From Thalia democratica (lineage: Eukaryota), in assembly GCA_965202585.1 (NCBI GenBank), contig CBDBBG010000090.1, forward strand, positions 1 to 64,000: a stretch of 64,000 nt of DNA. Reading direction: 5' to 3'. The notes beneath the pieces were generated by a model. It made no database searches. It saw nothing but the letters and a program-made list of their open reading frames with translations, and was not told the origin of the DNA. This document shows, in pieces, positions 34,660 to 61,187 of this stretch. Numbering within the stretch: position 1 is the first letter of the stretch; each line of letters begins with the position of its first letter. A program made the translations under genes and the position numbers.

Positions 34660-36071
34660 TTAATACTGAGGCATTTTAGCACATGAGAAACAAAAAAGAG
34701 TATTAGTAGCATCACATGATTCTTCAGACCATTCATCTTTATCAACATCATAACAAACAACTGATGAACGTAATTCTTGAAATATCTTAATTTTATTTCC
34801 GATTGACATAGCTCTACTTAAATGTAAATTGTAAGATGGCTTAAGAGCAACAAATTCCTTACAAACTTTGTCAAATACTTCACAATTGTTATTACGATAA
34901 CCAATAACAAACAATTTATCTTTTATAACAACTAAACTGTGATTAATTTGATTATTTATCATACTGGGCATTCTAGACCATTTATCACCGAATACATCAT
35001 AAGATTCTACTGTGTTTAAATAATTATTATCATTATCCATTCCACCTGAAACAACAATATTTCCTTGAAAAACTACGGAAGCTGGTAAATCTCTTGATTC
35101 ATTCATTCTAGAAACTTGTTTCAGGCTTTTGTCTTTTGTATTAAATCGCAAACAAGAATTCGTTACTATCACTTCATAATCATCATCATACCAGTGTCCA
35201 CCAACGATAAATATTTCATTCATAAATGCACAAGTACAAAAATGTTCACGTTCATCAACCATATTAGTTACTACAGTCCATTCATTAGTAGCAGGTGAAT
35301 ATTTTTCGACTAATTTTATTAATTTATCAGAATTATCATAACCACCAAACATATAAAGTTCTCTTTTGAAACAAACAGCTTCAAAGTATGCTCTACATTC
35401 ATTCATTGAAACAAGGTCCTTCGCATTATTCATGTTACTTCCATCAATTTGTTCTATTTTACTTAATGTTTTATTTGATCTATTGACATAATTTCCACAA
35501 ATTAACAAGTCAAAATTACTTTGGTTACAATACCTCTTTGTGTAAAAAATGTTTGACTTGTTTTTAAAGCAGTTCTTGGCTGCCAAATCTTCTTTTAAAA
35601 TGATGACACTTTTACAGTTATCAGTAATTGATGAAATTTTATCTATAATATATTTCAATGCATGCTCTGACAGCAAAGGAAGTCTGACTTTTAGTAACAA
35701 TTGTTTTGCATATTTGCTACGTTCTTCAAAGTTAAATTTCAACCAAGTAATTGATGCATTGAAGATTTCAACTTCTGAGTGAATATTCAACTCAGAACTT
35801 GCAAGTATTTTTTCAACAAGACTAAAGTCTAATTGTAAAAAGTTTTGAGTTTCAATTACCATTGAAAAACAACGTTGAATATAAAGCAAGGATGACTCAG
35901 AAATAGTTGCTAGGTTGTAACATTTAGCTAAACTATAAAATGCAACAACATTTTTAACTCTTAATTTGTCTTGAATGACTTTGCTTATCTTAATAATTGT
36001 ATCCTCTTTTTGTAGAATCTTATTCAATTCTAAAGCTAAAACTATGTTATTTTCTTCCATACTTGGTACAT
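34660..36071 (-). CDS. Kelch-like protein exon 2 (end of degenerate BTB, BACK, Kelch repeats)
   Basis: Intact frame; acceptor ttgttttag at 36073-36072, phase 1 (G|AT); BACK motifs (NVVAFY, SEVEIFNASITWL, VRLPLL) and GG-type Kelch repeats (LYMFGG, IFIVGG, IVVSGG). Confidence 0.92.
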
Positions 36072-57730: not shown

Positions 57731-58009
57731 CTGTTAATGAGTGAAAATAAGGTTATTACTTGAATACAAATAATCTTTTACATATTCATAATTTGTATTT
57801 ATTTATTTATATCGTCATTTTAATCTTAAGAAATTTAATTTATATTTATGCTTGATCATAACGATACGGATAAGATAAACACGATTGAAATAATAAGTTA
57901 TTAAACATGTTTCAAAAAACTTAAAACACACTAACATAAGAAAAAATCTTCATATGTTTAAGTTATTATTAACAATAAAGTAGATGAGCATTAAAAAAAA
58001 ATCACTCAC

Positions 58010-59455
58010 TATCAATAATATCCATCAGATCATCTAAAAGTGAATCTTCATCATTAATTTCGTTGTTTATATAATTACTTTGGGTATTTACTGATGTAAA
58101 TGCAGTTTCTTTACTTGGATTATTGAAAACAGGATCATTATTTGTCTCCATGTAATTGTGATGACCCTCATGGTCAATCTGTGGTAAACTTAAATTATTT
58201 TTATTACTAAACAATACCCCACTTCTATGACTTCCATTGTTGTTTTTAATAGTGAGTTCTCGTAGTTCTTTGCTATTGTCTGATTCTAGCTGATTTCTTG
58301 GTTTCTTAAAGCTTGTGCTTTGATCATCAACTAAGTTATTTTTACTCTTTTTATATCTTTGATGTTTAAACCAATTATTAATTTTTACTATATCCACCCC
58401 AAGATCTATGCTAATTCTTTTCCTATCATCTAAACTTGGGTTTTTGCATTTTTCATACTCCATTTTCAAAATGGCTGTATCATCACAAGAAAACTTTTTA
58501 TACTTTTTTTGTTTAGAATAGTTTCTTCCTCCTGCTCTTTTAGACATGAACCAAAAATGTACTCTGAGCGCATAAACGCCAAGCTCTTTGCTAATTCTTA
58601 ACTTCTCTTCAGTACTTGGATACTTACATTTTTCATACTCCCTCTCCAAAAATTTTATCTCTTCAGAAGAAAAAGGTATATGCTTTTGTTTTCCATCGTT
58701 CTTCTTTTCTTTACAACTAGTATCTAGTTCTTTATTCGCATTGTAACGTCTATTGTAAAACCACTTGTATATTGTTATAACATCTATACCTAAATCACTG
58801 CTCAGTTTTTCTATTTCTTCTCTGTTAAGTTTCTTGTTAACTTTTAAAACCATATCAAGGGCTTCTTGCTGATATTGGTTAAAATATTTTTTTGAAGCGG
58901 ACTGAGCACGTCTACTTTTGAAGTATTTGTTTGTGTCATTTACGTCTAATTCTAAATCATTGCTAAGTTTTTCTATTTCTTCTCTGTTTGGCCTATGGTT
59001 TGTATTGAAAAACATATCAAGCTTTTCTCGCTTGTTTTGGTTAATTATTTTATTAGAAGTGTTACTTTTTCTCTTAAGGCTCTGTCTTTTGTTATTAAAC
59101 CATGTTTTTAAAGATTTTTCCGTTCGTTTTGTCTTAAGACTCAAACTTTTGATGTCTATTTTGCTAGGTTTGGATTTTTGTTTGAAAAAATCTTTCAAAA
59201 TTTTTTCTTGCCATGGTTTCAATGTTATATGTTCGTTGTGTTTTACTGTTTCTTCTTGCACTAGAGGTTGGTATTCAGTTTCTGTTCCTTTGTTTGAAGT
59301 ACTTGACAATGCTTGACTTACTTGAACACCTGGAAAATTATGAAGTTTGTTAGAAGTTGTCTGATCTACACATATCAAGGAAGAAGGCAAATAACTTATT
59401 TCTGGTATTAATTTGTCATCCGCTTTAGACTGACTGCTATCTGTGCTGCATGATC
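58010..59455 (-). CDS. Internal exon encoding five tandem divergent homeodomains
   Basis: Helix-3 motifs WFNNKR, YFKSRR, WFYNRR, WFMSKR and WFKHQR, each preceded by F..-L..-P/L-..-LS..LG spacing; acceptor tatatag 59457-59456 (phase 1); donor A|GTGAGT at 58009. No in-frame ATG before HD2, so an upstream exon is required. Confidence 0.88.
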
Positions 59456-59530
59456 CTATATATTAAATAAATAATCAGTTGATTGCCATACAGTGAAGTA
59501 TTTAAAATTTTAAAAAATATTGATTTAAAC

Positions 59531-59630
59531 NNNNNNNNNNNNNNNNNNNNNNNNNNNNNNNNNNNNNNNNNNNNNNNNNNNNNNNNNNNNNNNNNNNNNN
59601 NNNNNNNNNNNNNNNNNNNNNNNNNNNNNN
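59531..59630. other. Assembly gap (100 N)
   Basis: Run of N. Confidence 1.
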
Positions 59631-59687: not shown

Positions 59688-61187
59688 TCATGACTTTTGG
59701 TCTTCCTTCATAAGTGGCTTGTAAAGCACGTCCCTAATACTATTGGAACCAGTCAGCAGCATCAGCAACCTGTCAACTCCCAACCCCCATCCAGCGCAAG
59801 GAGGCAGTCCGTACTCAAGAGCAACACAGAAATCCTCATCATGCTTCACTGCTTCCTCATCCCCCAACTCCTTCATTTCCACCTGTCTCATGAACATATC
59901 CCTCTGAACAACAGGATCGTTCTGCTCAGTGTAGCAGTTCACCATTTCCATACCCTCTATATACAATTCAAATCTCTCAGAGACCCCTGGCCTGTCCTTG
60001 CATTCTTTTGCCAGTGGGCTCATCACATGGGGGTGGTTTGTGATGAAAGTGGGTTTTGTTAAGTTTTTGACAATAAAGTGGTCACAGAGTTTGTCTAGCA
60101 TCCTTGATGTGGTCTGAGGTTCAGGGCAGCTCACGGAATGGATCTGGCAGATTTCTAAAAGTCTTGTTCTGGATTCTTCTGTATGAAGTTCTTTTGGATC
60201 TGGTAGTTTGACGCCCATTTGTTTCTCCAGTTCAGGCATCATGTCAACTCTTTCAAAAGGAGTTTCAAGGTTATACTCTGGGCGGATTTCTTTGAAAATT
60301 CTAGCAAAGAGTTCTTCTGTCATGTGCATCAAATCATGGTAATCAGAATAAGCTTTGTAAGCCTCGCAAATTGTGAACTCTGGATTGTGTGATTTGTCCG
60401 CGCTCTCATTCCTGAAAACCTTGCCAATCTCAAAAACCCTATCAAATCCACCTACTAACATTTCTTTCAACCTCAGTTCAGGTGAGACTCTGTTGTACAG
60501 GTTCATCTTGAGGTCGTTGTGGAAAGTTTGGAAAGGTTTTGCTGCTGCTCCGCTTGCCACAGTTGACAGAATAGGAGTGGAGACTTCACTGAAGTTTTCC
60601 TTGTTGAAAAAATCACGGATTATTGAATTGAGTTTGGTTGGCACCAGCATTTTCTCATAAGAGGACTTGTTGACAATGGTGTCCAAGTACCTCTGCCTGT
60701 CTCTCAGTTCCTTGTTCTCCAGCTGTTCAGGTATGACCCTGGTGCAAGGAGCCAGCAGTTCAAGTTGATGGGGTATTATGCTCAACTCACCCATTTTTGA
60801 CTTTGCAGCAAAACCGCTGACTCCAATGTGATCACCACGCTTTATTTTGTCAACATCTGTGTGGAAGTCGTCTTCAGATTTGTACCAACTGCAGTTTGCC
60901 ATCACCTGCAACTTGTGATTGTTTGACTTGATGGTGTAAAAAATTAGCTTCTTGCCAGCCTTTCTCACCGACATGACTCTGCCTGCCAACTTGCACTTTT
61001 CTTCAAAAAGTTTGTCCCCGCTTTTTGTCATGTTATCATATTTGCAAATGTAGTCTTGTATTGAGTGTGAGCATGAGAATTTGTTGGAGTAGGGATTCAC
61101 ACCTTGCTGCTTCATTTGTGATATTTGCTTGCTTCTTTCAATGTGGTAAACTTTTGCTTTGTCAAGGATGTCATCTTTGGTGGTTAC
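59688..61187 (-). CDS. KARS1: Class II lysyl-tRNA synthetase, eukaryotic cytosolic type, divergent, single 1.5-kb exon
   Basis: OB-fold (AGRVMSVRKAGKKLIFY, LQVMAN, GELSIIP), GAAAKPF.T.HNDL, motif 2 FEIGKVFRNE..HNPEFT.CE.Y, MSPLAK, ERFEL, motif 3 LEYGLPP.AGWGLGVDRL. Frame extends 24 codons above the ATG to acceptor ttttatttaag (61189-61188). Symbol denotes family, not proven orthology. Confidence 0.93.
   Translation of the reverse strand, partial: VTTKDDILDKAKVYHIERSKQISQMKQQGVNPYSNKFSCSHSIQDYICKYDNMTKSGDKLFEEKCKLAGRVMSVRKAGKKLIFYTIKSNNHKLQVMANCSWYKSEDDFHTDVDKIKRGDHIGVSGFAAKSKMGELSIIPHQLELLAPCTRVIPEQLENKELRDRQRYLDTIVNKSSYEKMLVPTKLNSIIRDFFNKENFSEVSTPILSTVASGAAAKPFQTFHNDLKMNLYNRVSPELRLKEMLVGGFDRVFEIGKVFRNESADKSHNPEFTICEAYKAYSDYHDLMHMTEELFARIFKEIRPEYNLETPFERVDMMPELEKQMGVKLPDPKELHTEESRTRLLEICQIHSVSCPEPQTTSRMLDKLCDHFIVKNLTKPTFITNHPHVMSPLAKECKDRPGVSERFELYIEGMEMVNCYTEQNDPVVQRDMFMRQVEMKELGDEEAVKHDEDFCVALEYGLPPCAGWGLGVDRLLMLLTGSNSIRDVLYKPLMKEDQKS

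Follow-up and report, generated by a model that had tools for sequence, protein, structure and literature searches.

The 64,000-nucleotide (nt) stretch of Thalia democratica analysed here (contig CBDBBG010000090.1, positions 1 to 64,000; hereafter the window) carries on its minus strand, at 58002-59455, an exon that encodes five homeodomains in tandem. This exon is probably the 3' coding exon of a gene from an undescribed, tunicate-restricted family of multi-homeodomain transcription factors. Multi-homeodomain proteins are rare, and the known ones (ZHX, ZFHX, HOMEZ and DUX) are few, old and poorly understood. Here, we show that the window exon is one of at least 20 paralogous frames organised largely as a segmental array, that its domain number has grown by internal duplication, that its paralogs keep their reading frames and domain scaffold under selection, and that amino-acid change among them is concentrated at DNA-contact positions.

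Five homeodomains in a terminal exon

Counted from 59390, the minus-strand frame has 462 codons and ends in the TGA at 58002-58004; upstream of 59390 it remains open as far as 59465. The Pfam Homeodomain model (PF00046) matched five stretches of its translation (whole-protein E = 4.4e-44), and each of the five homeodomains (HD1 to HD5), scanned singly, exceeded the gathering score of 22.9 bits. AlphaFold2, given a 15-sequence family alignment, predicted five three-helix bundles, with a predicted local distance difference test (pLDDT) mostly of 75-91 within the blocks, between disordered termini; the 75-residue head and the 112-residue tail had no Pfam match when scanned. The core residues of the homeodomain (L16, F/Y20, W48, F49 and R53) are present, with Y at position 48 in HD2. 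Residue 50 is N, K, Y, M and K in HD1 to HD5, and residue 51 is Asn in HD1 and HD3, S in HD2 and HD4, and H in HD5. The linkers between domains measure 0-12 residues, and HD2 directly abuts HD3 with no linker at all. HD4 has the standard spacing of 60 residues and is therefore not a TALE homeodomain.

Most of this had been anticipated by the initial annotation, made from the letters of the window. Its five tandem, divergent homeodomains all stood up to scanning and fold prediction (five, rather than fewer than three, are supported by profiles), its recognition helices read identically in the frame translation, as did the residues that it gave for position 50 and the restriction of Asn51 to HD1 and HD3, and the pairs HD2/HD3 and HD4/HD5, which it took for internal duplicates, each fall into one clade of the domain tree described below. 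The five domains do lie within one uninterrupted exon, though paralogs add further 5' coding exons, and the proposed upper limit, 59455, is the first base after a conserved AG acceptor (59457-59456). The features of the exon and of its upstream edge are as follows.

58002-59455, minus strand: terminal coding exon of the multi-homeodomain gene; TGA at 58002-58004, upstream boundary from the paralog alignment (homology and a conserved acceptor)
59530-59629, no strand: scaffold join of 100 N; array unit on its left, right side matching C7:50.906 Mb at 94%
59456-59457, minus strand: AG of the 3' splice acceptor (tatatAG/GATCATGC; tatatAG/GATC), phase 1
59238-59455, minus strand: N-terminal low-complexity region, predicted to be disordered (pLDDT about 30), with the conserved motifs DDKxIP and NFPGVQ; no Pfam match
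59067-59237, minus strand: HD1, type A, helix 3 WFNNKR, Asn51 kept; 37.7 bits, clade A (95/97), helices at residues 59-71, 77-87 and 91-112
58890-59054, minus strand: HD2, type B copy 1, helix 3 YFKSRR, Ser51; 32.1 bits, groups with other type B domains
58725-58889, minus strand: HD3, type B copy 2, helix 3 WFYNRR, Asn51 kept; 34.8 bits, typed by the domain tree
58521-58694, minus strand: HD4, type C copy 1, helix 3 WFMSKR; 47.3 bits, clade C (100/93)
58338-58508, minus strand: HD5, type C copy 2, helix 3 WFKHQR; 37.5 bits, typed by the domain tree
58053-58337, minus strand: disordered C-terminal tail; pLDDT 27-39, no Pfam match
58005-58052, minus strand: predicted C-terminal acidic amphipathic helix (DEDSLLDDLMDIIDSE); residues 447-461, low confidence in AlphaFold2

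An antisense frame of 132 codons, rich in leucine and phenylalanine, overlies HD1-HD2 at 58918-59316 on the plus strand and is most simply explained as a by-product of the A/G-rich coding strand.

Paralog array, gene model and domain history

A six-frame search of the 802-Mb genome recovered nine near-full-length copies of the exon (80-92% protein identity) and further, longer relatives. The family comprises at least 20 frames; sixteen occupy a 0.9-Mb segmental array on C7 (50.92-51.81 Mb), the remaining ones being located on the unplaced scaffolds C99 (the window's own, with three genes) and C604. The 8-kb flank downstream of the window gene matches several C7 repeat units at 92-96%, and successive genes at C7:51.43-51.81 Mb are 59-90 kb apart. 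Internal tandem repeats of about 2.2-2.7 kb (75-85% identity) were also seen upstream of array genes, e.g., at C7:51715000-51725000 (L018, L024). A genome-wide homeodomain scan gave 870 first-look candidates. Arrays with identical homeodomain scores (60.3 bits) and a spacing of 20-120 kb occur at C6:69.83-70.22 Mb (11 copies) and at C4:36.18-36.71 Mb (13 copies and a weaker one); such repeated arrays of 11-14 copies with identical scores suggest that homeobox genes are widely involved in segmental amplification in this genome.

The window exon is not a first exon, since no in-frame ATG occurs before about codon 125 of the 462-codon frame. An alternative genetic code and very short introns were considered for the missing ATG and dropped once the paralogs revealed upstream exons. 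In all eleven paralogs, the acceptor is preceded at about 320-340 nt by a 66-nt block (about 95% conserved) that sits between AG and GTAAA; its sole open frame ends in phase 1, and in L007 this exon 2 measures 65 nt, with a 1-nt deletion. The phase-1 donor of this block fits the phase-1 acceptor of the window exon, the AG of which is kept in 12 of the 12 copies compared, with variable adjoining bases (TATAG, CTAGAG, TTCAG, CTCAG). A further 1.5-3 kb upstream, exon 1 starts with ATG (MHCNSKLL...), ends in AAAG/GTAA in phase 1 and is 190 nt long (189 nt in L002, 178 nt in L010). When the three exons are joined, L003 and L004 have open reading frames (ORFs) of 570 and 568 amino acids without interruption. 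Judging from these conserved 5' coding exons of its paralogs, the window gene is not a one-exon gene.

The exon-1 peptide recurs 1-5 kb upstream of nearly every family member and also at distant three-domain genes (C6 and C7:44.58 Mb), where it has 44-62% identity. Two further members have their own copy upstream: L035 (C99:71552-77275), just outside the window, with five homeodomains in a 696-codon frame, and L034 (C7:50917970-50923055), with three in a 713-codon frame. The peptide had no match in the Pfam scan, and its hydrophobic residues are spaced 3-4-3-4 from L7 to L38, i.e., in a heptad pattern. Six-domain genes need one more GT-AG intron of 65-73 nt at the start of the large exon to stay in frame; in genes of the window type this intron is possible and not required, the stretch being in frame either way.

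The upstream exons of the window gene itself are not visible. Its contig ends at the N run, 73 nt upstream of the acceptor, and the homeobox side of that run has no counterpart at C7:50.906 Mb, the locus that the other side matches. Because the two sides thus have different homologies, the N run is a scaffold join and the lysyl-tRNA synthetase ORF beyond it is no true neighbour; as the contig ends at this join, the 5' part of the window gene lies outside the assembly. We left the N run unfilled and analysed the upstream sequence of paralogs solely as their own. From these homologies, C99 could be a mosaic of haplotypes or a scaffold joined in error.

Family members differ in domain number. By the counts of a family-trained profile, genes of the window type have five domains, as do L030, L031 and L033 in other combinations; L010-L012 and L032 have six, and the genes at C7:44.58 Mb, C6:73.43 Mb and C6:73.45 Mb have three. 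In a maximum-likelihood tree of 57 domains, all first domains form clade A (support 95/97), clade C (100/93) unites HD4 and HD5 with the third domains of three-domain genes, and HD2, HD3 and the middle domains (type B) fall between the two. Accordingly typed, the three-domain relatives at C7:44.58 Mb and C6:73.43-73.45 Mb, as well as P0001 from Tara Oceans, are A-B-C. Distant three-domain genes on C9 join clades A and C on long branches and appear to be tied only in part to a single A-B-C superfamily. These clades identify the window protein as A-B-B'-C-C', derived from an A-B-C ancestor by internal tandem duplication, so that its domain number, as read from the tree, is recent and comes from three.

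Near the C-terminus, a motif resembling DLDDLIGDTSLFPEIFND is common to three- and six-domain members and to the metagenome relatives, the five-domain type retains just its terminal SLLDDLMDIIDSE, and the DEDSLLDDLMDIIDSE helix, nearly invariant across nine five-domain paralogs, looks like a shortened form of the motif. On this evidence, the ancestral protein consisted of a short, heptad-patterned (coiled-coil-like) N-terminal exon, nearly linkerless homeodomains A, B and C, a disordered tail and, towards the C-terminus, an acidic-hydrophobic motif. B and C were each tandemly duplicated inside the exon in the window's subfamily, and A as well in a sister subfamily with six domains; the whole gene then multiplied with the 60-90 kb segmental units to yield at least 16 genes on C7 and the copies on unplaced scaffolds.

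Selection on the paralogs and relatives elsewhere

Pairs of paralogs have a ratio of nonsynonymous to synonymous divergence (dN/dS) of 0.48-0.69 overall, at a dS of 0.07-0.19. Random placement of the observed substitutions would be expected to create 6-7 stops per pair, and the chance of staying stop-free did not exceed 0.001 for five of the six pairs, being 0.04 for the closest one, while eight of nine copies are free of stops. Every length difference among paralogs is a multiple of three. Taken together, the improbable absence of stops and the in-frame insertions and deletions indicate that the reading frames are maintained by selection.

Within the domains, change is unevenly distributed. 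No change was seen among eight paralogs at W48, F49 or R53, nor at 10 of the 14 positions 30-43, whose remaining four have one or two extra states; variability is highest at position 50, followed by position 5 and then by 13, 17 and 51. For the textbook set of DNA-contact positions (2, 3, 5, 6, 7, 47, 50, 51, 54 and 55), dN relative to gene-wide dS was 1.15-2.4, compared with 0.33-0.62 for the rest of the domains. Tree-based parsimony gave 56.5 nonsynonymous to 7.5 synonymous changes at contact codons and 87 to 39 in the rest of the domains (Fisher P = 0.007), with nearly equal synonymous changes per codon in the two classes (0.15 and 0.16). Such an excess at contact residues is the opposite of neutral decay and, as far as codon comparison can tell, fits diversifying selection on DNA reading.

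Relatives outside this genome are few and unnamed. A word-based search of 5.8 billion proteins found a single relative, P0001, a three-domain ORF on a Tara Oceans contig (40% identity). When 1.84 billion representatives were scanned exhaustively with phmmer, 286 matched at E ≤ 1e-3, four at E ≤ 1e-30 and none at above 61% identity; the closest were unnamed metagenome ORFs, with P0007, from two Tara samples, at 61%. By alignment or by the family profile, eight metagenome ORFs belong to the family (P0001, P0005-P0007, P0012, P0037, P0284 and P0285), and P0007 and P0037 keep both the frame and the DDKF(I/V)P motif. A profile of the three-domain members retrieved nine proteins, all of them unnamed metagenome ORFs from ENA. 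The named matches that were looked up are multi-homeodomain proteins of stick insects, a cyst nematode, a wasp and sheep and are unrelated to the family, and a feature search of the ESM Atlas returned generic homeobox clusters only (best score 0.81). A literature search found no description of such a multi-homeodomain family in tunicates. The family thus appears, so far as it has been seen, only in this tunicate genome and in ocean metagenomes. The suggestion of the initial annotation that the exon belongs to a lineage-specific, fast-evolving and possibly unnamed multi-homeodomain factor is therefore supported in each part: by the four matches at E ≤ 1e-30 among 1.84 billion representatives, by an overall paralog dN/dS of 0.48-0.69 that rises above 1 at DNA-contact positions, and by relatives that are all unnamed.

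The metagenome searches also yielded three single ORFs with still more homeodomains: P0002 (L046), P0003 and P0011 (L045), with 16, 12 and 6 Pfam homeodomain stretches in 1666, 1300 and 456 residues, respectively. To our knowledge, no named protein has as many homeodomains as these. P0011 comes from a compact genome, in which it lies between genes for RED/IK and phosphoglucomutase, next to another multi-homeodomain gene.

Known homeodomain families and alternative explanations

Assignment to a known class was based on solved-structure and Pfam rankings only, and these rankings gave no single answer. Whole-protein searches of solved structures returned generic matches (engrailed, DUX4, Pax6, PBX/Exd and Hox-A13), with ZHX outside the top 60 of the profile search. 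A ZHX2 homeodomain was the second-best solved-structure match of HD1 (E = 1.2e-3), after Lhx9; for a type B domain of a three-domain member, two ZHX3 domains (27.9 and 27.3 bits) scored on a par with HESX1 and Pax3; and DUX4 was among the best matches for types B and C. Foldseek against the Swiss-Prot models ranked ZHX1-3 in all of the top 14 places (E = 2e-8 to 1.5e-6, identity 11-14%), with DUX next, a ranking that five homeodomains in a row would be expected to yield in any case. The type B domain with the ZHX3 matches, that of L037, scored 25.4 bits with the Pfam Homez model (PF11569), above its 21-bit cut-off, and higher still with the general Homeodomain model; six other members gave 13-17 bits, below the cut-off, and the window protein had no Homez match at E ≤ 1.

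A zinc finger, which the initial annotation had not seen and which would be expected upstream of a ZHX-like gene, did not turn up. Reading every frame of the 15 kb upstream of six paralogs and of the window between 40 and 64 kb, as well as the exon, revealed no C2H2 pattern, and the upstream exons likewise contain no zinc finger; genome-wide, the best match to the ZHX-type finger (PF18387) was 20.7 bits, below the 27-bit cut-off, with no homeodomain nearby. Several other classes were rejected. All five domains align to the 57-position homeodomain model without insertion and with standard L16-W48 spacing, and each singly scores below the 24-bit cut-off of Homeobox_KN, which excludes TALE. The nematode HOCHOB model (PF17943) gave 13.5 bits for the window protein (E = 0.12) against a cut-off of 26.3 bits. 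DUX membership was dismissed, as the five domains are of three types with no class signature and the similarity to DUX4 is generic (14-20% identity), and the leucine zippers found between the homeodomains of HOMEZ have no room in linkers of 0-12 residues.

The family nonetheless resembles several known systems in part. Like ZHX1-3, it is chordate-restricted and strings together four or five divergent homeodomains, of which several lack Asn51; unlike them, it lacks C2H2 fingers, has linkers of only 0-12 residues, acquired five domains from three, and has three coding exons, whereas the ZHX coding sequence lies in a single exon. Moreover, ZHX1-3 are single conserved genes, in contrast to a tandem array of about 20 fast-evolving copies. 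The three atypical homeodomains and acidic C-terminal region of vertebrate HOMEZ recall the ancestral A-B-C form, but the only heptad pattern of the family is in its N-terminal exon and the window protein does not match the Homez model. With the DUX4/DUXC arrays of mammals it shares closely spaced homeodomains, a C-terminal (here putative) activation region, large tandem repeat units and fast evolution. DUX4, however, belongs to an unrelated lineage and has two PRD-class domains with Asn51 where the window protein has five unclassifiable ones, and its ORF is intronless and sits in 3.3-kb repeats, unlike the spliced family gene in its 60-90-kb units. In Rhox, Obox and KRAB zinc-finger arrays, DNA-recognition residues are established to change at an accelerated rate, and the family likewise combines tandem birth and death with faster change at such residues; Rhox and Obox proteins have one homeodomain and KRAB zinc-finger proteins a different fold, while the modular reader here is a chain of homeodomains. 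Nematode HOCHOB proteins also have several homeodomains each and a lineage-specific expansion, and their model is marginal in some family members, but the window protein has no cysteine loop between its domains.

If the family does consist of transcription factors, its members would be DNA-binding regulators in the nucleus, several domains of each protein reading short sites that lie side by side, with HD1 and HD3 as the most canonical domains, and the target specificities of paralogs would have diverged under diversifying selection. The acidic C-terminal helix or motif could recruit the transcription machinery as an activation element, and the N-terminal heptad exon may mediate pairing of the proteins. 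Several observations weigh against this account. Three of the five domains lack Asn51, making canonical DNA binding by all five doubtful. The window copy has no visible start codon or upstream exons, its contig ending at a gap, and some paralogs are damaged (an in-frame TAG in L009, an exon-1 frameshift in L002 and the 1-nt exon-2 deletion in L007). The sequencing runs that hold the sequence are DNA-type contig sets only (four runs, including marine metagenome pieces), and the run search found no RNA; for salps in general, transcriptomes and protocols for in situ work have been published (PMC12994792). The selection tests rest on few codons, the contact set was fixed only after the variability table had been seen, and mosaic, gene-conversion-like patterns among paralogs can inflate counts of change. 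A complex prediction for self-pairing of the exon-1 peptide (score 0.16, mark 0.32) is evidence neither way.

Alternatively, the family could be a highly derived, zinc-finger-less tunicate offshoot of chordate ZHX/HOMEZ, acting mainly as a dimerising co-repressor in which several homeodomains serve protein contacts. The organism is a tunicate, as its canonical lysyl-tRNA synthetase also indicates (below), and ZHX is chordate-specific and reduced in Ciona to one finger and two homeodomains (PMC7144352). The ZHX matches of Foldseek, HD1 and the type B domain, together with the Homez score of one type B domain and its sub-cut-off scores in six members, point the same way, as do the domains without Asn51 (a trait of ZHX as well) and a genome in which no separate ZHX-type finger is detectable. 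We nevertheless regard this origin as unlikely. No finger accompanies the exon, its upstream exons or the 15 kb upstream of six paralogs; Lhx9, HESX1, Pax3, engrailed and DUX4 score equal to or above ZHX; the Foldseek ranking, at 11-14% identity, is generic to strings of five homeodomains; and the window protein itself fails to reach the Homez model. The three coding exons depart from the single exon of ZHX, and the linkers cannot hold HOMEZ zippers. Since the five domains arose recently from three, the likeness to the five of ZHX would be convergent.

A bleaker explanation, that the array or at least the window copy consists of decaying duplicates whose open frames reflect youth rather than selection, draws on the low dS (just 0.07-0.19) and high dN/dS (0.5-0.7), on the copy with a stop and the two with frameshifts in upstream exons, on the missing 5' exons of the window copy, and on a run search that returned no RNA. 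It is very improbable given that 6-7 stops were expected per pair and eight of nine copies have none, that all insertions and deletions are in frame, and that scaffold positions are conserved while contact positions vary, which is unlike neutral decay; moreover, distant paralogs and other marine populations still share the architecture, the N-terminal exon and the C-terminal motif. The genes may, on the other hand, be functional and yet use their fast-changing "contact" residues for recognition of protein or RNA, e.g., for partner choice among paralogs or for recognition of a fast-evolving protein. Three domains without Asn51 would suit such a role, HD2 and HD3, with zero linker, could not easily dock side by side on B-DNA, and ZHX homeodomains are known to mediate dimerisation (PMC7144352, PMC2893186). 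This too seems quite unlikely: W48, F49 and R53 are kept, as are the basic N-terminal arms of HD3-HD5, the hypervariable positions are those established to set DNA specificity in canonical homeodomains, and HD1 and HD3 retain Asn51 in most paralogs.

A bolder extension of the transcription-factor reading, which we put forward tentatively and consider rather unlikely as it stands, is that the array might be a homeodomain counterpart of the KRAB zinc-finger system. By this analogy, positive selection would have made the base-contacting residues of modular poly-homeodomain readers diverge, whether in pursuit of fast-evolving DNA (transposons or satellites, for example) or to wire a developmental programme specific to thaliaceans, and internal duplication would set the number of domains (3, 5 and 6 here; 12 and 16 in single metagenome ORFs).

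Two other ORFs of the window deserve mention. Beyond the scaffold join, an intronless lysyl-tRNA synthetase ORF of 475 codons (59688-61115, minus strand), with an N-terminus shorter than the canonical one, has 48% identity to two copies of 576-585 codons on C10, a 96% twin at C7:50.906 Mb and a split copy on C2; from these comparisons, it looks like a diverged duplicated or retro-copied gene that has been kept open. The canonical lysyl-tRNA synthetase of the genome is closest among named proteins to those of Ciona (71%), Phallusia (70%), Clavelina (69%) and Styela (68%), with vertebrates at about 65%. A meaningful neighbourhood between the intronless synthetase ORF and the homeobox exon was ruled out, the join being non-syntenic and the ORF lying upstream of no paralog. 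An intact ORF of 466 codons with a BACK domain and Kelch repeats, without a BTB domain, is found at 34663-36060 on the minus strand.

The genes described here form a young family in which domain number grows from three to five to six by internal duplication and gene number reaches about 20 by segmental duplication. With amino-acid change focused on the DNA-reading residues, they amount to a natural experiment, set in the sister group of vertebrates, on the ways in which homeodomain chains gain new specificities. If the hints of ZHX/HOMEZ affinity were true, the family would also bear on the origin of those chordate genes. It also supplies concrete candidates for lineage-specific regulators of the unusual way in which pelagic tunicates develop.

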